Shown here: in pieces, positions 1-22,493 of the stretch
Numbering within the stretch: the stretch's first letter is position 1
How the letters are laid out: every line of letters starts with the position of its first letter
From: Lepidodermella squamata
Taxonomy: Eukaryota > Animalia > Gastrotricha
DNA: 64,000 nt
Assembly (NCBI GenBank): GCA_047495785.1
Contig: JBLDXI010000003.1
Coordinates: forward strand, 2,108,001-2,172,000
Direction: 5' to 3'
The notes under the pieces: model-generated
The model's input: the letters and a program-made list of their open reading frames with translations, nothing else
Database searches by the model: none
What the model was told of the DNA's origin: nothing
Made by a program: the position numbers and the translations under genes

Positions 1-130
1 AGCGATGATAGGCACAAATATATTGCTGCTTTGTGTTGTCATTTCGAATAATGAGCCGCGTGAAAACAATCGATATTTAACTTTCGATTTTATTATATCA
101 GCCGGCACTTGTGCACCCGATACAGAATAC
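1..130 (+). repeat. Dispersed repeat also present at ~19315-19440
   Basis: Shared GATAGGC.CAAAT...GCTTTGTGTTGTC...ATTTCGAATAATGAGCCGCGTGAAAACA.TCGATA...GATACAGAAT. Confidence 0.75.
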
Positions 131-1388: not shown

Positions 1389-4300
1389 ATGGGAAATATT
1401 TTTTCCACCTGCCGCCGATCGAATGACGAAGAGTAAGTTTATTGCCGCAATAGAAATGCATCAAAATTACTTGTCTTAAATTAAGACACTGATGTTGTTA
1501 AATAAAAATCGCACGCAAACAGCATTTTTGTCACCAATTTCTTCACTCGAATCCCATTATAACAAAACAAAATGAAACTTTACCGAAGAACGCAGGGGCT
1601 ATGCTGGGATATAACTTGAACTTTCCGTATTTTTTCCCAAGTTGGGCTAAAACCGAGATTTTTCTGAAAACCCAATTACTCTAGGGCACTTTTCTAGAGT
1701 TTTCCTATATAATGTCTAATACCAATTGTAAAAAGTCCTTTTCGAATTTCAATGTGTCATCTGAATTGCGTTTTTATTCAAAAAAAACCCGCTTTTACAC
1801 TACGCCATTCGAATGGTAAAGGTTCGTTTTTCAACATGCCCTAACCTCGATTGTTCTCGATACTAACCATATTCAGGGAAACAGAGAATGAATTTTCGCA
1901 TGAAGTTAAAATTGTAAAATTAAGGTGGATATTTTACCCTCCTTTTCTCGTCTAGTTGAGTCTAATTGGGTCGAAAAATTGGAAGTTAACCTGAGATTTT
2001 TTCGGAGCCTTGCTTCAAATAAAATGGGGCCAAAATAAAAATAGGGTGCATAAAAGGGGTCGGTATACAGCCGATCATGATTCCAATGCCGCCAAGTAAC
2101 CCGCTCTACGACAGCTGGAGGGGCTAATTTCACGAGCGGGGCCGTCGTGTTAGAGATGCCTTTTCTCGTCATTTTCTAGATATCAGTGTGCGACTTTCAG
2201 GGGGGGGGGTGCGGGGGATCAACCCCCACCGACAAAAGAGAGACGACAAAATGAGAATTCATCCCCCTATTTCGTCAATTTTGAGATGTTCGGGAGCGTG
2301 TTTTAGTGACAAATCTTCAACATTTTCTCGCTTCGCTCGACTTTTCGCCAAAATAACTAGTAATTTTGGCAAATACAGCAAAAAATATTTTTACATCCCT
2401 GGCAGCTCGAGGATCCAAGATCGCGCCCTGCTTGATATTATGGGGCACCAATGAAAATCGAAAATGAAAATCTTCGACATAAATTAAAGTATTCAATTCT
2501 TGCAGTCTAGCTTATTGGCTTTATTTGACCCTAAATTCAATGGTTGTAGCAATGAATTTTTTCATCTATCGAATTAAAGCGTATTATCAATTATCAAGAA
2601 GCGGGAAATATTTATAAAATGAAATTTTTGATAGTCAAGCGCAGTTGAAATTTTCGAATTTCTTCATTGACGCCACTGAGAAAAATTCGGATATAATCGC
2701 TGAATGAAACCCGGATTTAAAGAGGAAGGGATGTTCGGATTCGGGGCGAATGTTCCGTCCGGCTGATTTACAGCAAAGGGCCCGGTCGGGTTCGGAGCAA
2801 ACAACCCGGTCGGATTCAGGACTACGGGGCCAGGTAGCCATGGTTGTGGTTCGGCTGGTGGTGGCGGAGGCGGTGCGTATTGTTGAGCTGGAATCTGCAT
2901 TAGAAGCAAAGCGGCGGCTTGCATTTGGCTGAGCTGAAGCTGCTGTCGGTTCAGCTCCTTTTGCTGCCGCATCATCTCGTTGTTTTGCCGTAACCTGCAT
3001 AGTATACACAAATCACATTATTTCCATATGGTAATCAAATAAATCGTCGGCCTTTTTTAAATATATCGAATTTTTACAAAAATTTGCGATATCTGTAACC
3101 AATATAATAGATATAGCGTCTATTTTTGCATTCACTTTTATAGAAAAAACTCTGAAAAATTATTAAAATCAAGGTGAATTCTGAATAATTTTCAAAAAAC
3201 GACTCGATTCTCATAAAAATTCTATATAAAATCAAATTTGAATTTTCATGTATTTTGAAAAAATTTCAATTTTTGTATTCAAAAATTATACCTTTCTTCT
3301 TTAATTTTAATTCGGCGCTCCTCCTGCTCGATTTTAGCTTGCTCCAACTTGAAGCGGTTTTGTTTTTCACGAACACTTTCGCGTTCGATTTCGAGCATTT
3401 CCTTTGCTCCTCCGCGATTTGCGACTAAGATAGTCTTTCCTCGTTTTCAAGCGCGGCCTGGCTGGATCATCACAGCTAGCTGTAGAAGTTGACGCAGTCG
3501 ATTTCGCGGCAGCTGTAAGACTGATATTTGAGCCGGCCGTGGCTGTCGCGACTTCCAACGTTTGCCGCTTTGAAGTTCCTCCGCCGGAAAGCGATCTTCC
3601 GCGCTTGAACGGTGGCTCACGTAAACTGGGTGGTTCAACCAATTCCTCTTTGATTTCCAGATTGTCAGGATCTAGAACATTCTATGTTCTGGAACCTTCC
3701 ATGCTCTGGAAACTTCCTGTTCTGGAACCTTCTATGTTCCAGATTATTCCATGGACATATATAAACATCTTTGTTTCTGTATTGATCCAGTTTGTATTAT
3801 TACATTTTCTCGTTATCAATAAAGGCAATACTTGGCGATAGCTTCTTGTTTTCACTCCGCTCCTTACACAGATCTGGATCAACATTTATAACTCCGGAGT
3901 CACGCCGAATCTTGGGTGGGAGGCAAGCGGGCGATTTACCCCGGATATCTTTCAGGCGCTCGTAATTCCTCATTGTCGAGGCTTCTTCTCCAGTCGCCTT
4001 CATTCTCGCCTCTTCTCTCTTATATTCTTCCTTCAACCGATAATTCGCAGTTAGGAATTATTTCTTGATGCACCAAAAGAATTGGTGAACCCTGGGCGAT
4101 ATTTAATCGGTCAATATATAATTTTACAGCAATTTTGTGTGGAAAAGCTGCCCAGAAATACCATGAAAAATAACTAAAAATATACCCCAAAATTGGCATC
4201 TCGACATATATTCCCAACGCGAGAAGCCGAATTCAAGAAGATGAAATTCGGTAGAAAACATTCAGAGACACGCTTTGCGGAATCACGCGAAATTTGCGGA

Positions 4301-7300
4301 ATTTTGATGATAATTTTATATTATTTGACCAGGCAATGAATAAAGCTCAGACATCCTATCCTGTTGACGGAAAATTCATCAGGTTGTAAATGACTCGTAA
4401 AAAGTAAAAATACCCACATTATCTGGTATTAATTCTTTTTAGTTCTCTCAAAATCACGATAAAAGCGTGAAAATAAACAAAACAAGCTAATCCGTGTTGT
4501 TCAACAATAAAATTATTACCATCAATTACCATCATTTACCATTCGCATATTAGTTGTGTAAAAGGGGCTATACCCTGTCTTCCGTATATTATATAATGTT
4601 ATTTATTGCCTTTCCAGAGCTGAGATGGCCGCGAACGTCAGCAAAGCCCAAGAAACTATGTGAGTTTCACTATTTTATTGTCTTACTATTTTTAAAAGCA
4701 CTTGATGCAGTCACACACCCTTCGACTTTATTCCCGAACTGGAATAATAAATACCTAACAATGGTTAATATGATTTATTGCGTTTTCAGAACGATGATGG
4801 CTGCGAACGTGACCCAGGCGCGTGTAAACATGTAAGTCTCACTATTTTATTGTCTTACTATTTTTAAAGTCACTTGATACAATCGCACACCCCTCGATTT
4901 CTTTCCCGAAAAAGAACAATCAATAACCAATTCTAGTTAATATGACTTCTTGCGTTTTCAGGGCTGATATGGCCAACGACGTCAGCCAAGGTCGTCAGAC
5001 TGTGTAAGTTTCATTATTCCTTCCTCTTATTATTATGAAAAGCACTTGATGCAATCACACACCCCTCAATTTCATTCCTGAAAGGGAACAATAAATACCT
5101 AACAATGGTTAATATGATTTATTGCGTTTTCAGAACGATGATGGCTGCGAACGTGACCCAGGCGCGTGTAAACATGTAAGTCTCACTATTTTATTGTCTT
5201 ACTATTTTTAAAGTCACTTGATACAATCGCACACCCCTCGATTTCTTTCCCGAAAAAGAACAATCAATAACCAATTCTAGTTAATATGACTTCTTGCGTT
5301 TTCAGGGCTGATATGGCCAACGACGTCAGCCAAGGTCGTCAGACTGTGTAAGTTTCATTATTCCTTCCTCTTATTATTATGAAAAGCACTTGATGCAATC
5401 ACACACCCCTCAATTTCATTCCTGAAAGGGAACAATAAATACCTAACAATGGTTAATATGATTTATTGCGTTTTCAGAACGATGATGGCTGCGAACGTGA
5501 CCCAGGCGCGTGTAGACTTGTAAGTTTCACTATTTTATTGTCTTACTATTTTTAAAAGCACTTGATGCAATCGCACACCCCTCGATTTCTTTCCCGAAAA
5601 AAACAATCAATAACCAATTCTAGTTAATATGACTTCTTGCGTTTTCAGGGCTGCGATGGCCGCGCACGTCAGCCAAGATATGTGAGTTTCACTATTTTAC
5701 TGTCTCACTATTGTAAAAAGCACTTGATGCAATCGCACATCCCTCGATTTCTTTCCCAAAAAAAACAATCAATAACCAATTCTAGTTAATATGACTTCTT
5801 GCGTTTTCAGGGCTGCGATGGCCGCGCACGTCAGCCAAGAAATTATGTGAGTTTCACTATTTTATTGTCTCACTATTGTAAAAAGCACTTGATGCAATCG
5901 CACATCCATCGATTTCTTTCCCAAAAAAAAGCAATCAATAACCAATTCTAGTTAATATGACTTCTTGCGTTTTCAGGGCTGCGATGGCCGCGCACGTCAG
6001 CCAAGAAATTATGTGAGTTTCACTATTTTATTGTCTTACTATTTTCAACTTAGCATCCCGCATCAACTGCGGGACGGTGCGGGATGCCTCGCGTTCACTT
6101 AATCCCGCGCTTCGTCTCGCGCCTCCCGCAGTTCATCCCGCACATCCCGCTGCTCATCCCGCAGTGTCATCCCGCACTTAGAGCGTTTTAAATAAATAAA
6201 AATCGGACGCTAGCGGGAATCGAACCAGTGACTGCAATACCCAAACGCGCTCACTAATCGATTGCGCCACCGGTCGATTCACATTAACACATTCAGAACG
6301 GCGATACTTATATCGCGCTGAAATTACGTGAAATTACGTGAAATTACGTTTGTACAGAATTTCGAGGGGTATTGATTCATACAGAATCCGCCGATATAAG
6401 ATTAATGACCGGCGATACTTGGTTCGCGCTGAAATTGCGTGCAAAGTCATGACGGCATGATTATTATATTTTATTAACAGAGGCTCGAGTGCGTTGATTC
6501 ATATGTTCAAGCTTGACGGCTTGACGGGTCGGATAATCGGATAAGTAAAGACTTCATCCCGCAGGTCATCCCGCACTTGGGCGGAAAGCTGCCGGGATGT
6601 ACCCCGCACATGCTGCGGGTTGTATCCCGCACATACCGTTCGTGGCGCGGAAGAACCAGCACTTTAGGCAAAAAAACTCGTGTACACAAGAGTACAGTAT
6701 ATTTATTCTGTACAAACTGGTACAGTTTTGATGGCCGTAAATGTCAGTACAGCTCATTCGACTGTAGATTGAGTACAGTTGACCAGGCTGTATATTAGAT
6801 GTACAGCGTTTCATTCCTGTATCATGGCGTACAGCTCATTGAGCTGTACGCCCAAGTACAGTCGAATGCAACGTACATGCTGAGTACAGGAGTGACAGCC
6901 GTAATGACTGTGTACGGTTCGTCTAAACCGTACACGAGAGTACAGGAGATTCATTTTTATAACGTAGTCGATGGAAGTTACGGCCCGCAAACCCACTCAC
7001 AATTAGATTGACGATTTTGGTGAAAGAGTGAGAATCGGACGAATGTGCAGGTAATTAATTATTCGACGCGACGATTGCGACGCGACGATAGACGCGACGA
7101 TAGACGCGACTTCCATGTTTCGTTGCTCACATAAGAAACTTGACAAATGATTTCAACCTCTACTCCACCTTCTCAGACAAATGAAAATTGGGCGTTGAGC
7201 AATAACGATTATAAGTAAGTTGTTTCCTTTTCAAACTCCTGTGAATAAAAAGTAGGACCGAAGTCACTTGTCACGTCTAATATTCGATAAATAAGTCATC

Positions 7301-10300
7301 GTTTTTGATGGTAATAAAGCGCATTTTTAGCAGAAAGAGCAACTCGTGTCAAAATAAGGAATATAATCACACTTCATATTTCCTTCATGGTGACGATATA
7401 TCCTATTTTTTCTTCACAGCCCGTTGCCGATATTACCATTGCAAACGATTGTTCACATTTTTCGTGATTTTAGGTAAATTTTCTGAAATGACTGACTCAA
7501 TAGTAAAAGTGACTATCGGCGAGTCAAAGTGGGCACGTTGCGTTAGAATGAATAGTTCCGCGGAGAACCCTTTAGTATTTTTAAAAACGAAAATCTACCC
7601 CGTCTTCCGCAACATCTTTAAAGCTGACGACTATGGCCTTTTTTGGCATGATGGTGATCATTTCGTCATCATTGATGACGATGATGACCTCCTGCTAGCG
7701 TTTCACTTGAATCCAGAGCGCCTTCATATATCAGTCTTTTTTGGACGCTATCTCGAGGACCTAATGACGCTACAGCCATCTTTGTCGCAAAAGGTCGAGG
7801 ACTTGACGAGAATGATTTCAGGTATTTGTGAATATTTTTATCGAATATATCCTAGGTGGAAGTTCCTCTGATTTTCAAATTTTATGCTCAAAAGGAGAAA
7901 GTTTTCAGGACAGATCTTCCTAGTTTAGGTTAAATGTAAGCTGAATTGCTGGAAAAATCGCAAATTTATCCCAGTTTTTCGCAGCGCTAGGGTTCAGATT
8001 GTTTATGCATATTTCTTTAATTAAATGTCTCTAATTTTGCATAAGAATTACAAACCGAACCTAAGCCGTCGCCGGCCCAGACGCCTTTCAATGCGCCACC
8101 TCTGAGTTTAGGTGCGTCACAGTCTCACCTACCCATTGTCACCGGTACCAGTGGCTCCAGAGCGGCACCGCAGACAGTTGTTGATCGGACTGGGTCACTT
8201 TACGACAAAGTCAAGGAAGTCCCGCTCCTAAAGGCGGTTGCTAGGACAATGGATGAGCGCCGGGACCTTGGGGAGCCAGGCTACGTCAGGTCAACAACTG
8301 AGCACTTCCACCAAATACTCAAGGAGATGGGTACTTGCTTCGAAGAGTCCTTTGGGGGACGTACCGTCACTAATGTGATGAGCAAAATGAACCAATACAG
8401 GGTAAGGCAGTCCTAGTCTTGCTGAAGGCGTGGTTGCGAGTTTTTTTGAGGTTTTAAAATGGAATGAGGTGGAAATTACTTTAAATCTTCTTTTATATAA
8501 CCAATTTCTTAGAGGTTTTAAAATATCGAGATGGCCGCCATGGAACTTGATGAAACTACTGCTGAGTCTGAGTTGCGCCTAACGCGAAGCGAATGGCTTG
8601 AGTTGGAAAAATCTAAGAAAAAAACATCTAGAAGCTTGAGAGTCAAAGGCCAACGACGAGTTATGGGTAAATTTGTTGGGAAAAAACCTCATCGAATCGG
8701 TTTTCGCCGAAAGTGCCGCTTGTGCGATAAAACATTTTTCGATTCATCCGGTTTGAAAAAACATTTACAATTGTATTGCAAAAAAACAGGCAGCTTAGCT
8801 CTTACTGAGAAGGAAATTGAAGAATTGATTTATTGGTCAAAAAAAAATTATTTTGTCAAACAAAATGAGGCACCCAAGAGGCGATCTAGTATGAAAAATT
8901 AGCCGATGAGAACTAAAAATGATGCATATTGAACTTGATTATTGTTTATCTTTAGGACTTTATTTTGTCTACCTTAATAATGTCGAGCAATTCTCATTCT
9001 GATGTTAGCGCGACTTGCTCGTCGTGCTTGGGCTCTGCTGTTGGCAATGTATTGAGCAGAATGCTGGACAACCTCTCAGTTGTTTCCGCAACGTCAACGC
9101 CTTCTCAAATGTCGAATATTTCAGAAATTTCGAATGCTGACTATTTGCCTTCATTCATTTGGCCGAAAACTGAAGAAAGTGACGCGACCCTAGACTCTTC
9201 CTCCGATATAGCTAGAAACTTGAAACCCGGTGAGCCAGATCGAAACGTCCTGTTTCCACCGCTTCGGCCATTTTTATTTTATCATTGCAAGTGCCCAAAT
9301 CGTTGTAAAGACTATTTTCCTCAGCAAAATGTCCGCCGGCTATATGACGCTTTTCAAAACAGCAATTTAGATGACCGGCGCAGCTTCATAATTCGCCAAG
9401 TAATACCTCGACGTGGTCCTTCGAAACACCACACTTTTCAATTCGATGGCGCGTTTTCGAACAAGGCTTCGGCCGGCAACATTCGCGTGTGTTCGAAGTT
9501 TTTCCACAGCGCCCTTGGCCTTTCCCCGCGCAACTTCGTCGAGTGGACTTTAAAGAATAAAATTGGCGATCTAGGTTTCGCCAAGCCGGATGAACGAGGT
9601 TGTCAGCCCAATCCTAACGCAATCTCAAACGAACAGTTTGATCACTGCTGCAGGTAATTCCTTCCGGTCGATTTATGAAAACATTTATTTGCAAATTATT
9701 ACAGATTCATTGATAGCTATGAGCGTGCACCCGGTCATTATGTCCGAAAAAATTCCAGAAAAGTTTATATCCAAGGAGACATAACGCAGCGAGAAATGTT
9801 CGATGCATATTTGAGGCACTTTTCAACTCTCTCAGCGGGCCTATACCCACTTGGCTTCTCTTCCTTCAAACGGGTTTTACGCGAAGCCTACCCCGAACTG
9901 TCTTTGAAATTAACCAAGAAAGACAAGTGTTGCAAATGCAGAAAATTTAGATTGCGGCTACGCGAAAACAGAGTTGACGAGAGGCGCAAATCTATCTTCC
10001 AGGTGCATTTATACATGAAGAACGCTGCTAGGCGAGCTTGCAAGGCCGATACGAAAATGGCCCAAGAGAAATCGGAGGTTGTCGTGATACAGCTAGACTA
10101 TGAAAAAGCATTGTTAAGCCCGGCTATTTCCGATGCAAACTATCACTACAGGAAAATGAAAACTTGGAATTGCGGTATTTTTGCGATGTTTATATATATT
10201 TTAAATATATATTATATCTGTTGCAGTGATTTATGAAATGGTGTCTAAGAATGCGTTTTGCTTCATGTCCGATGACATTGACCTTGAACACCCTGACGGT

Positions 10301-13300
10301 AGCTCCGCTGGATCTGCGTTATATGCCTATATAACCAAGTATTTACCGGTTCACCATCCGAACTGCCGTACGCTGATCATATATAGTGACAACGGCACAG
10401 GGAACCACAGCAGCTACTTCGCAAACGCCATCATGTTCGCATTGGAAAACACAACGTCACAGCTCCAATCGGTCCATCACAAATTTTTCCAAGCTAATCA
10501 TACAATGATGGTCGTTGACCATTGTCATTCGTAATTTATGAATAGAAAATTGGCCGTTTTTCAACTTTTCAATTTTGTCAGATTGATTGAGCGAAGAGGC
10601 AGCCGGCATTCCATCAATTTCCCTACAGACTGGCGAGAAGTCGCCCGAATTTGTCGCCCTGAACAACCATTTTTCATTCACGATTTGTCTTGGGATGAGC
10701 TCCTGGATTTCCACGGCGAGCCAAGCTTCACATCAAAGCTTCGGAAGCCAAAAAACTGGAGAATGAGCAACAACCTCAACTGTGACCTTTTCGGGATTGG
10801 AACCAAGCCTAGCACAAAAAGCGATTATTTACCATGGTCGGAAGGCGTTTGGTTCAGATATCGAAAGGGGACGAAAGCTGTCTTTGTTCGAGACGGCTAC
10901 GAAGCGAAATGGCCTTGGAAGATGTACAGTCTATCGAAAAATTCGCTCAAAAAAGTACCAGTAGGAATTCCCCCGAAACTGAGAAAGTCCCCTCTTCCAC
11001 TCCCTTACCCTTTGATGGCTGACATGCTTGAGATGCTGAAGAACGAAATTATACCGAGGTCATATACCGAGAAGATTCTTGATCTTCCTTATCAGCCGTG
11101 GAATGGCAAACAATCCGACAAGCGTGCAATATTTGAGAGCTTCAATGTTAGAAAAAATTCAGTGCCTTATGATTCAGATTTTGATGATTGAATAAAAGAT
11201 ACCTAATTTCTATATTTGTATGATATAACATGAGTAGGAATCTATATTTGAGTGAAGCACGAAATATAGATCGAGTAAAGCGAATGAAACGAGTGAAATC
11301 GAGGCGGAGCGAGCCGGTAGGCGAGCGGAGACGAGATTTCACGAGGTGAATTAGTCGAACCTAATCACTAATCAGTCAATCAAATTACGTAATAGATAAA
11401 ACCGCCGAATAACCACTATACTTTGCGTTCACTTGCTGACGAAATATCGCGAAAAATGGGAATTTAAATTTGAGTAAACATTTGGATCGAAAATAATTGG
11501 TGGCATCCGCTAAGCTATAAGTCTAAGGTCTTCGCATCTGCAACTGCAGGGATCTGAAGCTGAACTGAAGGGATCTGAAGCTGAAAACTGCTATCCCGAT
11601 CAAGATAAATAAACTTTACCAAAGAATACGGCACAGACCATATACCGTACTTGAAGTGCGACATCGTCTTCTGTATTTCGCATGTACACTATCTTCTCTC
11701 CTGTACTTGAAGTACAGTATCTCTCCTGTACTTGAAGTACAGTATCTCTCCTGTACTTGAAGTACAGTATCTCTCCTGTACTATAAGTACAGTATTTGAG
11801 CCGTATGCATGAGTACTGCCCGATCACTACAGTACTAAGCAGTACGGTCAGGCGTGCCGTACTGGGGTGTACAGCTAATTTCAGCTGTACAGCGAGTACA
11901 GCGCGCCGACTGTACTTTATTTTACAGTCGGTTTGAGCAGTACTGCTGTTTTACAGAGCCATGGACTGTACATTTCGGTACTGCTGAACAAAAAAAATAA
12001 GGAAAGTGCTGGTTCTTCCGCGACACGAACGATACGTCCCGCAGTTCATCTCGCAAGTGTCCGGCAGCTTTCCGCCCAAGTGCGGGATGACCTGCGGGAT
12101 GAAGTGCGGGATGAAGTCTTTACTTATCCGATTATCCGACCCGTCAAGCCGTCAAAGTTATATTTAAAAGATCTTGATGCAGTCACTTACCCTTCGATTT
12201 TATTCCTGAAATGGAACAATAAATAACTGACACTGGTAAATATGATTTATTGCGTTTTCAGAACGATGATGGCTGCGCACGTGGCCCAGGCGCGAGAAGA
12301 ATTGTAAGTTTCATTATTTCATTTTCATACTATTTTTAAAAGCACTTGATGCAATTTCACACCCCTTGATTTCTTTCCCGGAAAAGAACAATCAAAACTA
12401 ATAATAGTTAATATGATTTTTGCGTTTTCAGAACGATGATGGCCGCGCTCAGGAGCCAGGCGCGTCAAGACGTGTAAGTTTCATTATTTTATTGTCTTAC
12501 AATTTTTAAAAGCACTTGATGCAATCGCACATCCTTCGATTTATTTCCCGAGAAAGAACAATCAATAACTAATACTAGCAATCAATACTAATACTAGTTT
12601 ATATGATTTTATGCGTTTTCAGGGCTGCGATGGCGGCGCTCCTCAGCCAAGCTCAACGTGATTTGTAAGTTTCATTATTCCATTGCCTTGCTATTTTTAC
12701 AGAACTTGATGCAATCACACACCCCTCGATTTCATTCTGGAATCCAGATATGAATGAATTACGAGTGCTATATTGTAAAATATTGCATGAGCATGGGTAC
12801 TGACTCTATTTTTTTGAGCGAATGCTATATTTTACGGTAACTCCATCTTGCCATTGTTCTCTAGTTGCGGTAAATAGTTTACCTTTAACGGAATTACACT
12901 TCTACGATCGACACTAAAGCGTAAAATACTCCCGTGCGATAAAATCAATTTTTCTGCGGCAAGTTCCACTCATACTACAGGGTGTTTCAGAACTTGCGCA
13001 CTAGAATAACCTGCGGCAAATGGTTGCCTTGGTATCCAGAGTAAACGTGCGCGCGCTGCGCATACATTCCGCGCACATATGTTTATATTTTTGCATAGTA
13101 TAAGGCGCGGCTAGCGCAAACGGTAATGCGTGTAATGCGTATATGCTATGTAGTTGGCGTTATACGTCCCATATGGCGTGCAAGCGGTATGCGCGCATTA
13201 TAAAATGCGCAAATCGAACTCGTATATACCGTAACGCTGCTGCAGTAATGGGGATATCGCTAGGAAATAAGACTTGCTCTTGCAAAATATCTGGAACTTT

Positions 13301-16300
13301 GCCGATTTCTTAATGAAGAAACCTCCAACAGGACAGGTTCTTAATGCGGCTATGAATAAATTTCGAGTTTGCAATACAAATATGATGAAAACTAATCCAG
13401 ATAATGTGATTTTTACGTGCTGCTGTTGTTTTGTTCCATGAATTTGATTTCCGTTCATTCACTCTTGGAAAAAGCAGTAAAAATTGAGAAGAACTGAAAA
13501 AAGTCGTGAGAAAAGGTAATGTTGCAACACTCTGATTGACTTTAAAAATTTCTGTGAGCTAAAACTTAAAAGCAAAAACATGATCGTTTCCACGGGATAA
13601 TGTCTTTTACCACTTGCAAAAGAATGGACGCAAAAACATTGACGTTACCTTAAAAAGCGTCTCTACGACGATTTTTGTGACATTTGACATGCGATTCCTT
13701 GCGAATCCTGTGGATAGACTTTTTGCGCGACCAGCCAGCCTGGTAGAGCAGATCTTGGGCTTTCCAACGATATCAAGAAATCGAAAATCCATCCACGGGA
13801 TCTCGTATGGGAGGGTCCCAAAGAAGACCCGTTGGCGGCCGAAAACAGCCCCTCTACAACGATATTTGTGACATTTCAGATTTATTGCGATTTCAGGTCA
13901 GAGATGGAAAAGCACGTCAGCGAAGCAGGAGAAGAAACGTAAGTTTCATTATTCCATTATTTCATTATTCTTTTATTATTATGAAAAGCACTTAACGCAA
14001 TCACACACCCCTCAATTTCATTCCTGAAAGCGAACAATAAATAACTAACAATGGTTAAAATGATTTGTTGCGTTTTCAGAGCTGAGATGGCCGCGCACGT
14101 GACCCAGGCGCGTGTAGACGTGTAAGTTTCTCTCTTTTATTGTCTTACTACTTAAAAATCACTTGATGCAATCGCACACTCCTCGATTTCTTTCCCGAAA
14201 AAGAATAATAACTAATACTAGTTGAAATGATTATTTGCGTTTTCAGGGCTGCGATGGCCGCACATCTCAACCAAGCTCGACGTGATTTGTAAGTTTCATT
14301 ATTCCATTGCCTTACTATTTTTAAAAGAACTTGATGCAATCACACACCCCTCGATTTCATTCTCGAAATGGAACCATCAATAACTACCACTGATTAATAT
14401 GATTTATTGCGTTTTCAGGGCTGAGATGTCAACGCAAGTCCGTCAAGCTCCTGCGGATTTGTAAGTTTCATTAGTCCATTCTCTTCCTATTTTCAAAAGC
14501 ACTTATTGCAATCACACACCCCTCGATTTCATTCTCGAAATGGAACCATCAATAACTACCACTGATTAATATGATTTATTGCGTTTTCAGGGCTGAGATG
14601 TCAACGCAAGTCCGTCAAGTTCGTGCGGATTTGTAAGTTTCATTATTCCATTCTCTTACCATTTTTTAAAGCACTTGATGCAATCACACACCCCTCTATT
14701 TCATCTCCAAGGGGTAATATTCTCTCAAATTAGCATCGAATGCATGGTTATTTAAGAAGAAAGTTATCGTGGAGTTATCAAGAAAGAAATTTGCAAAAAA
14801 CATGGATAATTGATAGTAAAACATATATGATGACCAGAAATTTGCCAGATAGCTTTCTTCTTGGCAACATTCCCAATATTCACTACAATTTACTTAACGA
14901 GTTTCGATAGGAAATATTTCTCTCGCTATAAAAACATGGGTCTTTCCATTACCTCTACCTCCATTGCCATCGTGTATATCTTCAGGAAAGTACTTTTCTG
15001 GGCGACAAAAGATCAGAGATCACATTACAAAGAACCAAGCATCTTCAGATAGATCTGGTCGAGGGAGCAATTTTTTGAAAATTTGAAAAAAGCAATTGAT
15101 TGAAAATGTGGAAATATGTTTTCGCATTTGGAAATAAACAATGAAAATGAAATTTGTCTCGCTGTGGATAAGGGTGCGGGATAAGCTATACCCCACCCGG
15201 CCCACCCTACAAACATGATTTTTTGCCAGTATCAATGAGTAAGCATTCATCTTCTCGCAAAATCATTAACATATGCACACTATTTTTTGTATGGGAGAAT
15301 GCAGAGAAATTTTTATCACGCTGCAATACACGTGGACGTCCACATGATGAACTGCGGGATGTGCGGGATGACTGCGGGAGGAATTCGTATATTTCCACCT
15401 TGAAAAAAACAATTTAAAGCCACTGACTGGTTGGAGGATTAAATTCTGTACCTTAGCTTAAATCGCATGTGAGATGCCGCAGTTGGAAGAAATTTACAGC
15501 TGGGTCAGTGATAGAAATCAATGCAAGTACCAATGTTGAACTGCAAACGTGAGTCCATGAACGGGCTGGAAAAAGAAGCGGAAGAAGCAAATGCAAAGAA
15601 CGACTTCAGAAAGCTGTACGAAGTCATCAAGCTTCTTGGAGGTGAAAAGCGAGGCGGTTGTTCGGCAGAGCGGGCGCCAAGCGCCAAACGATTGGCTAAC
15701 CGAGCTGATAGTCAAAATTCCGAAAAAGGGGACGTGACCAACTGCGACAATTGGCGGGTATCACCCTTCTCTCGATTCCTAGCAAGGTGTGAAAACCAGC
15801 GAGGAACAGGCTGGTTTTCGCTCGCTCCGTGGGTGCATCGACCAAATCTTTGCCCTGCGGAGTATTGCGGAACAGTGCCTTCTGTGGAATTGCCCGGCGC
15901 TTGAAAACTTTGACGACTCCAAGAACTGCGACTTCGACTGCGAAACCTTGTGGAAAATCCTCCGACACTACGGCATTCCGGACAAAATTGTTCGATTGAT
16001 CGCCATTTTCTACACTGACTTTGAGTGCCGAATAATGATGGAGGCTGGAGTAGAGAGCGAAGGTTTTGCTGTCAACTCAGTGTTAGGCAGGGCTGTCTCT
16101 TGTTCTGCGTCGCGATCGATTTCGTGATGCGAGCTGTTACCGAAGTGCTAGGCGCACCCACTGAGTTGCCCTTGGGTGGACGCCTCAGGGCAGACGGGTG
16201 GTGGAGCTGACAAAAACTACGTGGCGGGCTACCTTTGAAAACGACCTGCGCAGCATGGGGTTAAGTTGGGGATCGGCTCAGATCTTGGCCAGGGACTCAG

Positions 16301-19300
16301 TGGAGAAGAGCCAGCGAGGAGGCAGTGCGCTCTGCTAAGGGACTATACTAGAACTACTACTAATACTACCATTGTTTGGAGGTTATCGGAATTCCCAGAA
16401 AATCAAGAAAAAATCATCGAAGTTCGCTCCAAGTATCAGAAGGTAGCTCTTGGTATGAAGAATCTGTTTTCCTGAAAAAGTCGTTCAATTTAACTTTTTT
16501 TACTGTTTTTACTAGTTTTCATGGTTTATTTCCAAATGCGAAAACATATTTCCACATTTTAAATCAATTGCTTCCTGGTTAAATGTTGAAAAAATATTGC
16601 TCCTCTCGACCAGATCTATCTGAAGATGCTTGGTTCTTTGTAATGTGATCTTTTGTTGTCAAGAAATCGAGGTTTGAAATTTTGATATTTCCGATTTTTG
16701 GCCTCCAAGAAATTGATGAATCAGCAGGCCATCTGGCGCCCACGGCGTTACACCCTTTGTCTCGCGCTTAGTCAGTCTATACTGAACATTTGCCATTGCG
16801 TATACAGTAATATATACGCAATGGTAGATACGGTATAGAAGTATTTCGAAGCATACCCTCCCTGTAAAGGGCGCTTAAACCGGGCCCCGCACTGGGTGCG
16901 CCCCGCAACGCTTTCTTCGTATAGCTACGTATAGCTTATCCCGCACCCTTATCCCGCAGTCCCGCATCACGTGAACAAACTGCTCTCGGTATGAAGAATC
17001 TGTTTTCCTGAAAAATTCGTTCAATTTAACTTTGTTTGTAGCAATTTTCATTGTTTATTTCCAAATGCGAAAACATATTTCCACATTTTCAATCAATTGC
17101 TTTTTTCAAATTTTCAAAAAATTGCTCCCTCGACCAGATCTATCTGAAGATGCTTGGTTCTTTGTAATCTGATCTTTTGTTGTCAAGAAATCGAGGTTTG
17201 AAATTTTGATATTTCCGATTTTTGGCCTCCAAGAAATTGATGAATCAGCAGGCCATCTGGCGCCCACGGCGTTACACCCTTTGTCTCGCGCTTAGTCAGT
17301 CTATACTGAACATTTGCCATTGCGTATACAGTAATATATACGCAATGGTAGATACGGTATAGAAGTATTTCGAAGCATACCCTCCCTGTAAAGGGCGCTT
17401 AAACCGGGCCCCGCACTGGGTGCGCCCCGCAACGCTTTTTAGGTGAGATAGACGTGTCGCAGACACCCGAGAATCCATCTCAGAATTCGTTTCTTACATA
17501 AAGATTCCTTCATTTTTTGTTTTGTTCTAGTGCATCGGCTGGCACCCAGCACGCTGCAGTACGTATTAGGACTTACAGATGAATTACCTGCAAACAAAGG
17601 GCTGATCGATCGGACCGATCGCAAATATCGCGGGGCAGTCCATCACTGACGCAGCAAAGATAACTTCGGCTCAAATTCTTAACATCGCCTCCTTTCTGTT
17701 TGCGCTACAGCAACATCACTCAAGTCTACTGTTATTCAATATGCAGACGACACCACCATTTATTTCTCGGCTAAAAATGTGACTGAAATTGAAAGCGTTC
17801 TTCAAAAAGACCTTGACAATCTCGTACTATGGCTAGGTTCTAACTGTCTCAAAGTTAACGGCAAAAAATCCCAGCTAATGATCGTTACACTGAAATCAAT
17901 TGGCAAAATTAATATTACTATAGGCGGGGTCTCAATTGAACAGACAGATTCGATTTGTTTATTAGGCTTCACTCTAGACGAAAAACTGCTCTACAAGGAA
18001 CACATCGAGAAAGCTTGCTCTAAGGCTCGAAAAGGTATTTATGCGCTTCAATTAGCGGCAAAGAATGGCTTGAATAGGGACTGCCTGAAATCAATGGCAA
18101 ATGGCTTGATTTTTTCGCACTTACAGTACTGCGATATTATTCTAAATGAAGCCTGTCCGACTTCTCTTCAAAAACTACAATCTTTGCAGGATAAGGCTGT
18201 CAGAATTGTCATGAATGCGCCGGATTGTGCCGACCCTTCTCCTCTACGCGACGAGCTCAAATGGCTTGACCTTCAGGGCAAGCGAAACGTGCACATTGCC
18301 ACCTTAATGTACAGATGTCTTGCTGGTGATGCACCCGATGTTATAAAATCTATTTTTGTTCCTAATCCTCCATCTTCTACTCGTTCTTCACGTCTCAGCT
18401 TCAAAATTCCTACTATGAGACTTGACTACGGCCAGGCCTCTCTTAGTTACGCAGGGCCTCTCTTGTTTAACAATTTACCACTCCACTTTCATTGTCCTCA
18501 TCATCGCCCAGTCGATATTACTTCCTATACTAGCCTCCCTCCACGATGCGATTGCGGCTTCAAAATCTGTTACAATGCTCACTCTTGCCGACAACTTGTT
18601 TACAATTTTCTGTTGACTAAACCTAAGCTCAAATCATATAAATGCTAAATTTTGTACATCTTTTGTTTTGTTATTATCAAACTTTGAAACGGATTGAAAC
18701 ATGACTCGAATTTTCTGCCACTTTTATACCACTTGAAACTTTTTGTTATCGTGCTCTCAACTTTGGGATTTATGCACTTAAATAAAATAAATAAAAGAAA
18801 CATTTTGGTGAAGTGGTACATGCGTAATACGGGCGTAATAGAGTGGGAATCGATTTTCAAGCCGAAGTTATCGAGCGGCATTGTTGTTATTTACTGCAAA
18901 TGTACTCGGACGCGCCTCAGCAATTCGAGCTCTGCAATTCATGACAAAATAAATCGATGATTATTACACCGTACCCACATATTTTTAGTGAAGTTTCCCA
19001 CATTAGCATTTGCAGCTCAGCACTAAATTAAGGAAAGATTGTATATATACCGGCTTCCACGTTCAACTTGTTCCCGAATTAAAAAAGTTTTTAGTTCTAG
19101 AAAACTGGGTGTCCTCCGGTGTCCTCGGGTTTTTTTCATTTGTCAGGTCAACCTGTAGCTACAAAAAGTATTTAGCATCATAGGCGGATCGAGGTCTTTA
19201 CTCATACGTGGAACTGACATTTAATGGGATCATTCTGAGTTTTTTGTGCTATTACCCGTTTATGGACCTCAGCGTCTTTTTATCTTTAAAAATAACCTGA

Positions 19301-21401
19301 AATTAAGAGATGGCGGAGATAGGCGCAAATAATATACATATTGTTGCTTTGTGTTGTCTCATTTCGAATAATGAGCCGCGTGAAAACAGTCGATAACTAC
19401 TTATCGATTTTATTTATCTACAATGCACCAGATACAGAATGAATTGATTAAACGAAGGCAAAATCAATTGATCAATGATGCCAGGACCATTTTTTCTACC
19501 GGTTTTACTCAAGATCGTGCTGCCCTTGCATCAGCCACCTTCGCTATGCATTAAATGATTAAATCCGCTAAGAAAATTGAGTTTGTGCAACAGGTTTTGT
19601 GCAACTGCATGTGTGAAAAATCGATTTTGTGCAAAAGTACAGGTAAATCCATTTCGCCAATGAAACTCTTCGATTTCTTAAGAAAATTCGACATTAACTT
19701 GACAACTGCGGCTTTATGTGGCCACCCTTTATATGAGTTTTGATCAAAATCTATATCGAATTTTAGTTCGTTAGTCGCTTCAACGACCATAATACTTGGC
19801 ACTTTACTATCATGGGGAACTGTCTGGCCGGTCTATTTCCGCAAGTGGCTATTGAACGGTAAGCTTATATTGCCAAAATAACCAGATCACTAACAATAGT
19901 CTTATTCAAAACTATTTTATAGGATAAAGCTTGTTGGTATAACAATTAACATGTTTGTAATTTCAGGCAACGCATGGCCGATCTATTTGCCGAGGCAGAA
20001 AAAAACCAGTAAGTTTGCGCATGCGACGGATTGAGCCAAGATGCCAAGACGCGTTTGTTTCTTTTTCCGTCACACTGTTACAGCATTGGCATCTTGAATT
20101 GATTAGCTGAATTGAGTAGACTCAAACGTGGTATTCTACGAATGACATAATAAAAATTAAATAGATATAAAAATGCCATTGATTACTGTAATTTATTTAC
20201 ATGTGATTTCAGGGAGATTTTCGAACAAAGAATGGGATTAATGATGGCGCAGTTGGCGAATCTCATCCAAGCGCTGTCGGATTTTGTATTCGACGAAACG
20301 AAGCCGGAAGAGTAAGTTATTGATTTCGCGCCGAATCTCATTTTGAATTTCTCAAAACGGATATCTCCGTTGTTCACCAAATGTTGCATGCATATTATGG
20401 AAAGCAGCAATTTTTCGAGGTAGGCTCTTGTTATGCTTTGAGGTAGGCAATCCGACCTCTATTGCGATAAAAAAACCTCGTTTTCACCTTTCACTAATAT
20501 GGTTTCATTTGACTTGATGATATCAAGACTGATCAGCAATAGCCTAGATCTTATACCACGTGAAAGAGTAGCTCGCGTTCTACATGCATGCAAAGTTTGG
20601 TGGAAAAGGGAGATATCCGTTTTGAGAACCACTCTATTAATTACAGCAGATCAAAATTGTAGATTGAGTGCTTTTACTCTGGTCATTTTTTTCAAATAAT
20701 ATGGTGATTTCTTAACAATTTCAGGAAGGAAATGGCCAATGTCATGAAAGAAGCAAGAGAAAGCGCGTACGTTTTATTATGTTTTTGACCGATTAAAAGA
20801 AGGAGGACCCAGAGGTTTCCCAACTTACGGCGTCGTAGTTATTCATGTAGAATCAGTAGCATATGAAGCTGAAGTAATTTCTCGGAAAATTCATTAATTT
20901 TGATCAATTCGATCGCAAAGATCCTAAGATTTATACGTCGCGACTTGCGTGCCATAACAGTGTGTGCCGGAAATAGAAACAAATGGCGTAATGCATTTGA
21001 TTCGCAGAAAAAACTGGTGTTCATCTTTTTTCCAGCGATTATCAGGCACGCGACTGACTTGGCGAAGGTGCAAAAAGTTAGTTTTGCGTCTTTTGTTTTT
21101 ATATGTCCGACACATTGCTATGGCGCGCAAGTCGCGAAATGATCGATGCTGTGGGTCGATAAGCAAGTAGCAATTCGAGTGGTGACCTTCCCCTTCACCT
21201 TATACCTAAAATACCAGAAGAGGTGTTAAAAATGAATATCGTGATCGTAAATCTGTTTGATCCTTTAATTTCCAAGTGTCGCAACTTCAACTGAGAAACC
21301 ACTTTATGCAATCCCAAAATTCATGCCAACCTAAGTTCTTCTTCTTGTTTTGTTCCAGCCTAGCGGCTGTTGCCGAGAAACGTAAGCGAATCATGGCTTG
21401 A
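1389..21401 (+). CDS. Micro-exon gene encoding a putative N-myristoylated 14-aa-repeat coiled-coil protein (~320 aa, 22 coding exons)
   Basis: Exons read from AG/GT boundaries: 1389-1432 (MGNIFSTCRRSNDE), 4618-4659, 4790-4831, 4962-5003, 5134-5175, 5306-5347, 5478-5519, 5649-5681, 5811-5846, 5977-6012, 12262-12303, 12432-12473, 12623-12664, 13897-13938, 14080-14121, 14247-14288, 14419-14460, 14591-14632, 19967-20008, 20213-20311, 20725-20766, 21359-21401 (LAAVAEKRKRIMA-stop). All internal exons are phase 2-2 and multiples of 3, flanked by (T)TTCAG/TTCCAG and GTAAGT/GTGAGT/GTACGT. The joined CDS is 963 nt with no internal stop. AATAAA lies near 21514. Confidence 0.75.
2184..2430. mobile_element. 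hAT-type MITE
   Basis: Imperfect TIRs CAGTGTGCGA...TCGCGCCCTG, flanked by a near-perfect 8-bp duplication CTAGATAT / CTTGATAT. Confidence 0.6.
2664..4036 (-). pseudogene. Disrupted antisense gene nested in an intron: trihelix/Myb-SANT-like segment, coiled coil and Gln/Pro-rich tail
   Basis: LKEEYKREEARMKATGEEASTMRNYERLKDIRGKSPACLPP resembles the C-terminal half of trihelix Myb/SANT-like domains. MLEIERES...KIKEER splices (GT at ~3290, AG at ~2997) to LRQNNEMMRQQ...PPPPPP. The upstream pieces need frame changes to join. Confidence 0.4.
4560..6046 (+). repeat. Tandem ~172-bp exon+intron repeat array, block 1 (9 units), with an alternating 344-bp dimer structure
   Basis: Exon starts at 4618, 4790, 4962, 5134, 5306 and 5478 are exactly 172 bp apart. 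4790-5133 and 5134-5477 are essentially identical. Conserved intron motifs CACTTGATGCAATC and TTGCGTTTTCAG recur in each unit. Confidence 0.95.
6205..6275 (-). other. tRNA-derived remnant or SINE head
   Basis: The minus strand reads GACCGGTGGCGCAATCG (A-box-like) ... GGTTCGATTCCCGC (B-box), followed by a T-run. There is no clean anticodon arm. Confidence 0.4.
7488..8416 (+). CDS. Transposon-borne PB1-domain plus Myb/SANT-like protein (exons 7488-7821, 8046-8416)
   Basis: IVKVTIG...YGLFWHDGDHFVIIDDDDDLLLAF matches the PB1 basic Lys and acidic OPCA motif. Exon 2, joined in phase 1, encodes YDKVKEVPLLKAV...HFHQILKEM...FGGRTVTNVMSKMNQYR, a Myb-like helix pattern. Confidence 0.55.
8531..8902 (+). 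CDS. Small basic zinc-finger protein (C2H2/C2HC-like) within the transposon
   Basis: Contains KCRLCDKTFFDSSGLKKHLQLYC and is Lys/Arg-rich. It may be a 5' exon of the transposase, but no clear in-phase donor was found. Confidence 0.5.
   Translation: MAAMELDETTAESELRLTRSEWLELEKSKKKTSRSLRVKGQRRVMGKFVGKKPHRIGFRRKCRLCDKTFFDSSGLKKHLQLYCKKTGSLALTEKEIEELIYWSKKNYFVKQNEAPKRRSSMKN
8980..11191 (+). CDS. Sola1-like DDD transposase, ~685 aa, 4 exons (8980-9653, 9705-10174, 10227-10530, 10582-11191)
   Basis: Three ~51-nt GT-AG introns join the ORFs in frame. Motifs: VCSKFFHSALGL, GHYVRK, KKDKCCKC, and candidate catalytic aspartates in QLDYEK, YSDNGTG and HTMMVVDHCHS. No stops after splicing. Confidence 0.8.
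11697..11792. repeat. 25-bp tandem repeat with internal palindrome CTGTACT-TGA-AGTACAG (~4 copies)
   Basis: Directly visible. It is part of the GTACAG-rich subterminal region of the transposon. Confidence 0.9.
12160..12745 (+). repeat. Same ~172-bp exon+intron repeat, block 2 (3 units)
   Basis: The repeat resumes mid-intron (TTTAAAAGATCTTGATGCAGTCAC) immediately after the transposon's right end. 42-nt exons start at 12262, 12432 and 12623. Confidence 0.9.
13875..14705 (+). repeat. Same ~172-bp exon+intron repeat, block 3 (5 units)
   Basis: 42-nt exons start at 13897, 14080, 14247, 14419 and 14591, with the same intron motifs. Confidence 0.9.
15000..17180. repeat. Long inverted-repeat pair (~15000-15195 vs ~16930-17180); probable non-autonomous DNA element
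   Basis: 15019-15150 is the reverse complement of ~17040-17175. GGATAAGGGTGCGGGATAAGCTAT (~15165) is inverted at ~16930-16955. Confidence 0.7.
15521..16370 (+). mobile_element. Decayed, internally deleted RTE-clade LINE
   Basis: Frameshifted RT motifs KGDVTNCDNWR, EEQAGFRSLRGCIDQIFALR, LWKILRHYGIPDK and VRQGCLL. A C-terminal KTTWRATFENDLRSMGLSW segment follows, then an (ACT/TAC)n tail at ~16341-16370. Confidence 0.8.
16446..17437 (+). repeat. Direct repeat of ~460 bp (16446-16915 and 16982-17437)
   Basis: Both copies run from GCTCT(T/C)GGTATGAAGAATCTG to CCCCGCAACGCTTT with few differences. Confidence 0.9.
17685..18796 (+). mobile_element. 5'-truncated CR1/L2-group LINE (RT C-terminal part, open to stop at 18648)
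   Basis: YADD at 17740-17751 is in frame with ORF 17779-18648 (LKVNGKKSQLM, LLGFTLDEKL, HLQYCDII). An A-rich AATAAAATAAATAAAA tail lies at ~18781-18796. Confidence 0.85.
20938..21136. mobile_element. ~200-bp MITE
   Basis: TCGCGACTTGCGTGCCATAACAGTGTGTGCCGGA at the left end is inverted as TCCGACACATTGCTATGGCGCGCAAGTCGCGA at the right end. Confidence 0.65.
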
Positions 21402-22493
21402 AGCGCCGTTCAGCTAATGTCATCTAATCATATACTGATCGATCGAACTTATGCTTATCATTATCGTAATAATCATATCATTTGATGCGTGTTTAGTGTA
21501 GAAATTATTTGCCAATAAAATGATGATGATATCTACCGAAATGAGGTACAATTTCGTCCAGCTTAATACTACTTTTGGAGAAAAATTCAAGAAGCATTTC
21601 AGAAAAATCACCGATCACCTGAAGTACAAGGAAAGTCGGAAATTAGTCCTCAATGGAATCATGAAACATTTTTTGCCTGAAAATGAAGGTAACATAAAGG
21701 TAAAGCTGAATACTGCCCAGGTGGAACTCCAAATTTCAAGTGGCCGAATTCCTCGTAAAGTGACGGTATCGCCGAAGCTCGATCACTCAGAAAAGTGTTT
21801 TGGGACCCAACTGGATCTATTCGACCCTGGAGGGCCTATTAGACCCTATTAGACCCTATTGGAATCCAATCGGCAGTAACAATATTCTAGTCTGAATCGC
21901 TATCGAAATCGCTTTTAAAAACACGAGAAGAAAACAAATTTATAGGTTTCGTCACCTTTTTATTTTTTTTAAATCAAGGTGAGCTCTGAAATTTCTCAAA
22001 ATTAAACAGTTCGTCCAGAATCTTCGCCTCAAACTTCCACATTTTTTCCAAATTTTGCTGACGAAAGGTTATTTCTAAAAATTGAAAACAACGTATTTTG
22101 TCCACAGCGTTAGGACCCCTTGCGGTATGTAAATTAAGACTTCTACCGTTGTCTTCAATATTTCTTTTCCTGAAGTTACCGATTTTTAGAAATTGCGTTG
22201 GAATTGGACAAAATGTACCCCAATACAGTGGTGAATTGAAGTCATGAATTGAACTTACAGCCTGACACCTTCCATTATTTGTACAAACAGCATGTGTGCA
22301 AACAGCCCCGGCAAATCGTAAGAGCTTACGGCGCCATACGTTGTATCCTCCTCATTCCGAAAAAGCTCAAATTTCGCCAACATCTTGACTTTCCAATTCC
22401 AAAGGTAGTTGAATCACGTTGCCTGCGTAATTTCTATAATTCAATTTTAGAGGTTTTTTATTAATTTTCTTAATAATTGATAAGCTCCACGTG

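Follow-up and report, generated by a model that had tools for sequence, protein, structure and literature searches.

A candidate orphan gene of Lepidodermella squamata in which an apparent 172-bp satellite may serve as an array of two-heptad coding exons

Is the 172-bp tandem repeat found in a 64,000-nucleotide (nt) stretch of the gastrotrich Lepidodermella squamata (assembly GCA_047495785.1, contig JBLDXI010000003.1, positions 2,108,001 to 2,172,000; hereafter the window) a satellite, or does it carry the exons of a gene? An original prediction, made from the letters of the window, favoured a protein-coding gene hidden in an apparent satellite. Our analysis points in the same direction. We propose that the locus holds one orphan protein-coding gene with two alternative 5' modules and that the array is used as coding exons, a reading to which we give a probability of roughly 0.55. 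The non-neutral, coding nature of the array is argued from three properties, namely an open frame, insertions and deletions that are all in frame, and splice signals that are the most conserved columns of the repeat unit.

A pattern scan and direct reading resolved the array into 17 units of about 172 bp, arranged in three blocks. Each unit has the same layout, with TTGCGTTTTCAG leading to the exon and a GTAAGT or GTGAGT donor following it, and TTTCAG (once TTCCAG) precedes each exon. The module of acceptor, exon and GT(A/G)AGT that had been claimed for each repeat unit is thus present in all 17 of them. Tandem Repeats Finder marks three stretches, 4594-6045, 12163-12732 and 13967-14704, as 172-bp arrays and also detects a higher-order period of 344 bp. 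Fourteen of the array exons are 42 nt long, two are 36 nt and one is 33 nt. Joining of the coding part of a first exon (exon 1a), the 17 array exons and four downstream tail exons, 22 exons altogether, yields an uninterrupted open reading frame (ORF) of 963 nt from ATG to TGA, which encodes 320 amino acids (aa). The parts of this long form are as follows.

1389-1432, plus strand: coding part of exon 1a, with ATG, MGNIFSTCRRSNDE, phase 2 and a GTAAGT donor, from reading of the sequence
4594-6045, plus strand: array block 1, nine micro-exons, from Tandem Repeats Finder, pattern scan and direct reading
4618-4659, 4790-4831, 4962-5003, 5134-5175, 5306-5347 and 5478-5519, plus strand: 42-nt exons of block 1
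5649-5681 (33 nt), 5811-5846 and 5977-6012 (36 nt each), plus strand: shortened exons of block 1
12161-12732, plus strand: array block 2, three micro-exons of 42 nt (12262-12303, 12432-12473 and 12623-12664)
13880-14704, plus strand: array block 3, five micro-exons of 42 nt (13897-13938, 14080-14121, 14247-14288, 14419-14460 and 14591-14632)
19967-20008, plus strand: tail exon of 42 nt, QRMADLFAEAEKNQ, with the format and motif type of the array exons
20213-20311, plus strand: tail exon of 99 nt, EIFEQRMGLMMAQLANLIQALSDFVFDETKPEE, single copy in the genome
20725-20766, plus strand: tail exon of 42 nt, KEMANVMKEARESA, with a GTACGT donor
21359-21401, plus strand: last coding exon, LAAVAEKRKRIMA, with the stop TGA at 21399-21401
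21514-21519: AATAAA, downstream of the last coding exon

The pattern scan and the joining of the exons also bore out the claim that all 20 internal exons have lengths that are multiples of 3 and are of phase 2-2. Exons of 33-42 nt, all of this kind, account for 19 of the 22 exons of the long form and for 777 of its 963 coding nt. No exon ends in TA or TG, and therefore no junction can create a stop codon, exactly as had been stated from the exon-end dinucleotides.

Several features of the array argue for its coding nature. The concatenated array contains no stop in the 230 codons of the coding frame, compared with 8 and 18 in the other two frames. When the same number of substitutions was scattered randomly over a common starting exon in a simulation, the 12 unique exons all stayed open in about 1% of the trials. 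The three shortened exons have lost 9, 6 and 6 nt, all in frame, and the splice dinucleotides of the array are intact in 34 of 34 cases. Across 12 introns, the 12-nt acceptor block shows a mean diversity of 0.014 against a minimum of 0.081 for internal 12-column intron windows, and the diversity of the donor hexamer falls within the lowest 2.7% of windows. The G+C content is 58% in the exons and 28% in the introns. Variability is highest at the third codon position (0.48, against 0.38 and 0.30 at the other positions), and the pooled ratio of nonsynonymous to synonymous divergence (dN/dS) is 0.34; the pooled proportions of nonsynonymous (pN) and synonymous (pS) differences in the exons are 0.31 and 0.59, against 0.19 in the introns. 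In the contrast of the two unit types described below, synonymous changes are in excess (p = 0.005-0.05, according to the pair), all of these pairs sharing one deep branch. Read together, these features indicate a long-term constraint on the frame, the splice signals and the encoded motif.

What would the array encode? Each 42-nt exon specifies a 14-mer of the form xxMAAxV(S/T)QARxD(L/V), which is kept through synonymous changes. Among 16 units, M3 is found in 16, A4 in 13, V7 in 11, Q9 in 12, A10 in 13 and R11 in 11. Residues of the set AVILMFWC occupy positions 3, 7, 10 and 14 in 100, 94, 88 and 88% of the 16 full units, in agreement with the 4-3-4-3 pattern of hydrophobic or small residues noted originally. 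Positions 9, 11 and 13 are never hydrophobic, and position 10 is nearly always Ala. Hydrophobic residues thus recur at the a and d positions with 3-4 spacing across many heptads, as in a heptad repeat, and the whole 320-aa protein contains only two Pro and five Gly. Since 42 nt correspond to 14 residues, or two heptads, the register is preserved for any subset of the 42-nt exons; the 33- and 36-nt exons would break it locally. From this pattern, the repeat units are predicted to form a coiled coil.

The array is confined to this locus. The 172-bp unit matches no other place in the 121-Mb genome assembly, and the pattern TTTCAG-N7-ATG-N32-GTAAGTT occurs 12 times at the locus and once elsewhere in the assembly, in unrelated sequence. 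No paralogues of the repeat, of the 99-nt exon or of the exon format were found in the same genome. The units fall into two old types, TMMAA... and AAMAA..., which have diverged from each other at about 40-50% of their exon positions and 22-28% of their intron positions. The double unit of 344 bp at 4790-5133 is repeated at 5134-5477 with 100% identity, indicating that change in the array is recent or ongoing and lending support to the unequal crossing-over proposed earlier. The three blocks were formerly one array, and all of the DNA inserted between them lies within introns. Neither the division into blocks nor the identical double units figured in the original prediction. The intervening segments are the following.

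6046-12160: inserted DNA of about 6.1 kb inside one array intron, unit homology ending at 6045 and resuming at 12161
12733-13879: non-repeat DNA of about 1.1 kb inside an array intron, unit homology being lost from 12733 to about 13880
14705-19811: array-to-tail interval of 5.1 kb, with retroelement debris, duplicated segments and a proximal upstream element at 18808-19440

The 6.1-kb insertion has inverted arms of about 150 bp at 6513-6665 and 12003-12155, which are 91-100% complementary, and the element within it appears to be DNA-transposon-like; no Pfam match was obtained for its internal ORFs. The array-to-tail interval contains an ORF of 289 aa at 17779-18648, likewise with no match in Pfam.

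Just upstream of the tail we found a second first exon, exon 1b, which is absent from the original prediction. Spliced in frame to the exon at 19967 and the rest of the tail, it gives a 90-aa protein that begins MGNCLAG... and shares its tail with the long form, the latter beginning MGNIFSTC... from exon 1a. First exons were scanned for in the 4.6 kb before the array and in the 5.3 kb between array and tail, ATG starts within or running into exon 14591-14632 being set aside. Three ATG-initiated, stop-free, phase-2 exons with a GTRAG donor were obtained in this way: an unrelated ORF at 5/149-186 and the two first exons 1a and 1b, which alone start with MGN. Exons 1a and 1b each lie downstream of one copy of an upstream element.

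19812-19858, plus strand: alternative first exon 1b, with ATG, MGNCLAGLFPQVAIE, 47 nt, phase 2 and a GTAAGC donor
1-128, plus strand: distal upstream element, which reaches back about 670 bp beyond the start of the window and is a colinear homologue of 18808-19440

By blastn, the segment from -667 to -318 (before the window start) is 70.5% identical to 18808-19173, and the segment from -20 to 128 is 75% identical to 19285-19440. No copies other than these two were found in the 121-Mb genome. The colinear identity of 70-75% and the presence of just two genome copies suggest that the 5' module, consisting of the upstream element and an MGN first exon, was duplicated long ago. Although exon 1a has diverged beyond alignment with exon 1b, ATG-GGN-AAY, phase 2, the myristoylation pattern and a consensus donor are all conserved in it. 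An unpaired splice acceptor precedes both ATGs, the TTCCAG of exon 1a ending 26 nt 5' of its ATG and the acceptor of exon 1b lying about 45 nt 5' of its own.

By inspection, both G-N-I-F-S-T of exon 1a and G-N-C-L-A-G of exon 1b fit the PROSITE pattern PS00008, G-{EDRKHPFYW}-x(2)-[STAGCN]-{P}, and a Cys lies near both MGN N-termini. The product is probably N-myristoylated and perhaps also palmitoylated. Inspection revealed no obvious signal peptide at either N-terminus: MGNIFSTCRRSNDEE is charged and has no hydrophobic core, and MGNCLAGLFPQVAIERQR contains merely a weak stretch of 11 residues with Pro and Gln in it. MGNIF of exon 1a and MGNCLAGLF of exon 1b are similar to the myristoylated N-terminus of ARF1 (MGNIFANLF...); the likeness may reflect just the requirements of N-myristoyltransferase and of an amphipathic helix.

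Expression was assessed with X2, a public RNA-like run whose RNA label is a guess and which is coded as another organism, yet which contains exact matches to the locus. Its contigs were compared with 14400-20320, a stretch that covers the array exons 14419-14460 and 14591-14632, exon 1b, the exon at 19967 and the 99-nt exon. One contig reaches 20312 and continues with AAGGAAATG, which corresponds to bases 2-10 of exon 20725-20766. It thus crosses the 20311>20725 junction, and therefore the intron 20312-20724 is spliced as predicted and X2 contains RNA. In addition, a contig piece on 19821-19859 shows no mismatch and stops at the exon 1b donor, and another lies on 20234-20284 in the 99-nt exon; the depth is 2-4 on both exons. 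Pieces as short as 18-39 nt were placed elsewhere in the compared stretch. These data support the short 90-aa isoform, the use of exon 1b and the splicing of the tail. For the long isoform, we infer the transcription from exon 1a and the inclusion of the array exons from their sequence.

Searches for homologues were blank. The 32-aa exon had no match at E <= 0.001 among 1.84 billion representative proteins and none in Pfam or Atlas. The open frames of 53 and 93 aa had no word-sharing candidates in a 5.8-billion protein set, with length windows of 29-93 and 51-163 aa. Three joined array units gave only sub-threshold matches to DUF (domain of unknown function) families in Pfam, and neither a scan of metagenome proteins nor a DNA pattern scan gave a hit. 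The relatives that the original prediction had proposed to look for thus did not appear for the tail or the repeat in any collection searched. For the neighbouring ATRX gene, no database protein exceeds 46% identity, and the best match is from an annelid. As the lineage is poorly sampled, the blank homologue searches mean little.

Based on these results, we propose the following history and mechanism. The parent gene would have encoded a small helical, probably N-myristoylated protein and would already have had two 42-nt exons of the MA...A motif type. Its proximal module, made up of the upstream element 18808-19440 and exon 1b, would give the 90-aa alpha-helical protein together with the four tail exons. 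A partial duplication may then have created the second, distal 5' module, with the old copy of the upstream element and exon 1a. One 42-nt exon with its intron may have been amplified to 17 copies by unequal crossing-over, the source exon type still being present twice in the tail. A transcript from exon 1a would splice through the array into the tail common to both forms. In its product, the lipid anchor and the conserved C-terminal module would be separated by about 231 residues built of two-heptad units. Coiled coils extend by about 0.15 nm per residue, so the array, if it formed a continuous coiled coil, would span about 34 nm. A further step, and at present a speculative one, is that the product is tethered to the membrane by N-myristoylation and acts as a coiled-coil spacer that would grow or shrink in steps of 14 residues, or two heptads. 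Over evolution its length would be set by unequal crossing-over, and in individual cells by the choice of promoter, giving 0 or 17 units, with a possible contribution from register-preserving skipping of 42-nt cassettes. Such a protein would represent an architecture like that of the schistosome micro-exon genes (MEGs), of independent origin, in an intracellular protein of a non-flatworm spiralian.

The use of the array as coding exons has to be weighed against several observations. In X2, no contig was found on 14400-14795, which includes the array exons 14419-14460 and 14591-14632, and the depth there is zero, although contigs show presence rather than absence and rare isoforms can be missed in a run of such low depth; the check for spliced RNA on the unmasked locus, put forward in the original prediction, therefore succeeded at the 20311>20725 junction and not at the two array exons compared, and the RNA-like contigs support the short form only. 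In record 13 of X2, moreover, the exon 1b and 99-nt-exon pieces are joined in opposite orientation, which we take, without proof, as an assembly or complementary DNA artefact. Among sister units compared as independent pairs, the dN/dS of 0.64 does not fall significantly below 1 (n = 6, p = 0.15), and exon and intron divergence, 0.176 and 0.141, do not differ (n = 5, p = 0.25). These pairs therefore do not demonstrate that the peptide has been constrained recently. Because the units share a common descent, the stop-free and splice-site statistics are not fully independent. Since no homologue was found, conservation between species is not shown, and three large insertions have built up in the array region. 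Much of this would fit a rival explanation, in which only the 90-aa gene of exon 1b and the tail is functional, and exon 1a and the array survive as a relic, silent or hardly used, of a partial 5' duplication followed by satellite-like amplification, the array being young enough to look intact. The presence of X2 contigs on exon 1b and the tail exons but not on the two array exons compared, the non-significant sister-unit ratio of about 0.64, the near-equal divergence of exons and introns in recent pairs, the 100% identity and hence very recent origin of some units and the transposons piled up in the region are all in its favour. However, the unit types differ at too many exon and intron sites for the array to be young, and despite its age 17 of 17 exons remain in frame, every insertion or deletion is a multiple of 3, no splice dinucleotide has been lost and the splice signals are still the most conserved columns of the unit. 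Exon 1a, too, has retained its start, myristoylation pattern, phase and donor though it can no longer be aligned to exon 1b. We therefore regard the relic as a serious but clearly less probable explanation than an array used as coding exons.

If the array is coding, its exons might also be spliced in combination, as the original prediction held in full: cassette exons, skipped or included combinatorially as in MEGs and troponin T, would give rods of varied length and sequence. The phase 2-2 exons with their junctions free of stops would allow it, any subset of the 42-nt exons would keep the heptad register, and the two exon types differ more than their introns in the pooled values given above. 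However, the model is pure inference from sequence, and near-identical consensus splice sites with introns of about 130 nt equally fit constitutive inclusion. Phase symmetry follows automatically from the duplication of one unit, and nothing in the sequence separates weak from strong exons. Competing RNA structures were not seen, the fold z-scores of the introns being about 0 and covariation negligible. The surplus of exon over intron divergence comes only from the deep split of unit types and is non-significant in independent sister pairs; for this reason, diversifying selection, which the excess of pooled exon pN (0.31) over intron divergence (0.19) had suggested, was dropped. Combinatorial splicing is accordingly judged unlikely. 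The introns themselves could instead be the functional part, encoding small RNAs in a host gene of the SNORD116 type with the exons as spacers. Well conserved intron blocks such as AAAAGCACTTGATGCAATC and an overall intron divergence below that of the exons would suit this idea. Yet a search of the array against Rfam gave no match even at E <= 1, the introns fold no better than shuffled sequences (z 0.01 to -0.32), and the consensus structure reaches only -4.9 kcal/mol; of its two covarying pairs, one derives from two sister units. Thus neither the RNA family match nor the conserved stable structure expected of such introns was found, and the idea would leave the preserved frame, the in-frame insertions and deletions and the amino-acid motif unexplained. 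It was rejected, and we consider it very improbable.

Our preferred reading, the array as coding exons of one orphan gene, would have several consequences. If expressed, the array would be an unusually clean case in which one exon equals exactly two heptads, and repetition of the unit would give a helical rod that can be lengthened or shortened without disturbing the frame or the heptad register. The rod would be switched on or off according to which of the two duplicated 5' modules is used. A silent array would still offer a snapshot of an exon-intron unit amplifying into a satellite beside its parent gene, which would be of modest interest. An expressed array would also be a warning for annotation: the gene would be missed by repeat masking and by homology-based annotation because it is a satellite to Tandem Repeats Finder and an orphan in every search.

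Additional observations were made in and around the gene. In the array introns (for example 5682-5708 and 5847-5873), the donor GTAAG can pair with a CTTAC about 20 nt downstream. Two units with a GTGAG donor have a CTCAC partner, a compensatory change, and as both are sister copies this represents one event at most; the unit at 4660 has GTGAG with CTTAC, giving a G-U pair. Run X1 differs from the window at many single bases within 14494-14926, with about half of the depth (42/82) on the variants, a sign that a second, diverged haplotype spans the 3' edge of the array. A DNA contig of the same run (record 4, 1209 nt, depth 79) joins 17711 straight to 18799, with 17712-18798 missing. This 1,087-bp segment, located upstream of exon 1b, overlaps most of the 289-aa ORF; its absence from one haplotype or individual suggests an insertion polymorphism. 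Two introns of the tail contain a repeat of about 50 bp in inverted orientation, at 20036-20095 and 20940-21000. An X2 contig equals 20036-20083 exactly and then diverges for 30 nt, so that another copy of this repeat is probably transcribed elsewhere. Rfam gave nothing more for the region of this repeat than a far sub-threshold MIR2646-like match at 20939-21136.

Within the first intron of the long form, gene-like open frames on the minus strand (2664-3642) encode Q/P-rich sequence (MCILCRLRQNNEMMRQQKELNRQQLQL...PPPPPPAEPQPW...), with a charged helical segment upstream of them, and may belong to a nested antisense gene. Farther along the window, two paralogues in tandem, each with a Laminin_G_3/ConA-like lectin domain, are separated by about 11 kb (44020-45066 and 54854-55975), and their downstream 54-nt exons, 45129-45182 and 56043-56096, are near-identical.

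How does the candidate gene compare with known systems? AKAP18-alpha/AKAP7-alpha are small, dually lipidated helical scaffolds, and the ARF GTPases have a myristoylated N-terminal helix. As a lead only, the short isoform resembles AKAP18-alpha/AKAP7-alpha in its MG... lipidation motif, nearby Cys, amphipathic helices and length below 100 aa. However, there is no detectable sequence homology, and the resemblance to ARF1 (MGNIF in exon 1a, MGNxxAxLF in exon 1b) spans 5-9 residues.

The likeness to schistosome MEGs, put forward in the original prediction, holds for the architecture. As in MEGs, an orphan protein is encoded in the long form mostly by very short symmetric exons, which are flanked by ordinary terminal exons and would permit in-frame exon skipping. 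However, schistosome MEGs encode, in every case, secreted or surface proteins with a signal peptide, and MEG families are reported to be restricted to platyhelminths (PMC4350168). Here both N-termini fit the N-myristoylation pattern and show, on inspection, no obvious signal peptide that would mark a secreted or surface product, and the blank protein database searches place the gene in no described platyhelminth MEG family. The lack of a signal peptide and of MEG family homology argues that this is not a schistosome-type MEG. MEG micro-exons are heterogeneous and their variants arise by alternative splicing, whereas here one 172-bp exon-intron unit is present 17 times and the splicing of the array is predicted from its sequence.

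For alternatively spliced small exons in a helical protein, the mini-exon cassette of fast skeletal troponin T (TNNT3), exons 4-8, offers a comparison in which alternative splicing is experimentally established; the five exons described there are heterogeneous and alternatively spliced, in contrast to the 17 duplicated units (42 nt) here (PMC2447309). This cassette is the nearest analogue of that kind.

Repeat-per-exon arrays are known from the 54-bp Gly-X-Y exons of fibrillar collagens and from the PEVK exons of titin. In these genes, as would be the case here, an exon with its intron has been amplified in tandem, the phase-symmetric exons encode whole structural repeats, and the copy number (in titin also exon skipping) sets the length of a rod or spring. 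The differences lie in the heptad-type alpha-helix, compared with the collagen triple helix or the disordered PEVK, and in the 42-nt exons of a small, probably lipid-anchored protein with no sequence relationship to either. Because its exons are tandem copies of one unit, the array of L. squamata is closer to the repeat-per-exon arrays of collagen and titin PEVK than to the micro-exons of MEGs.

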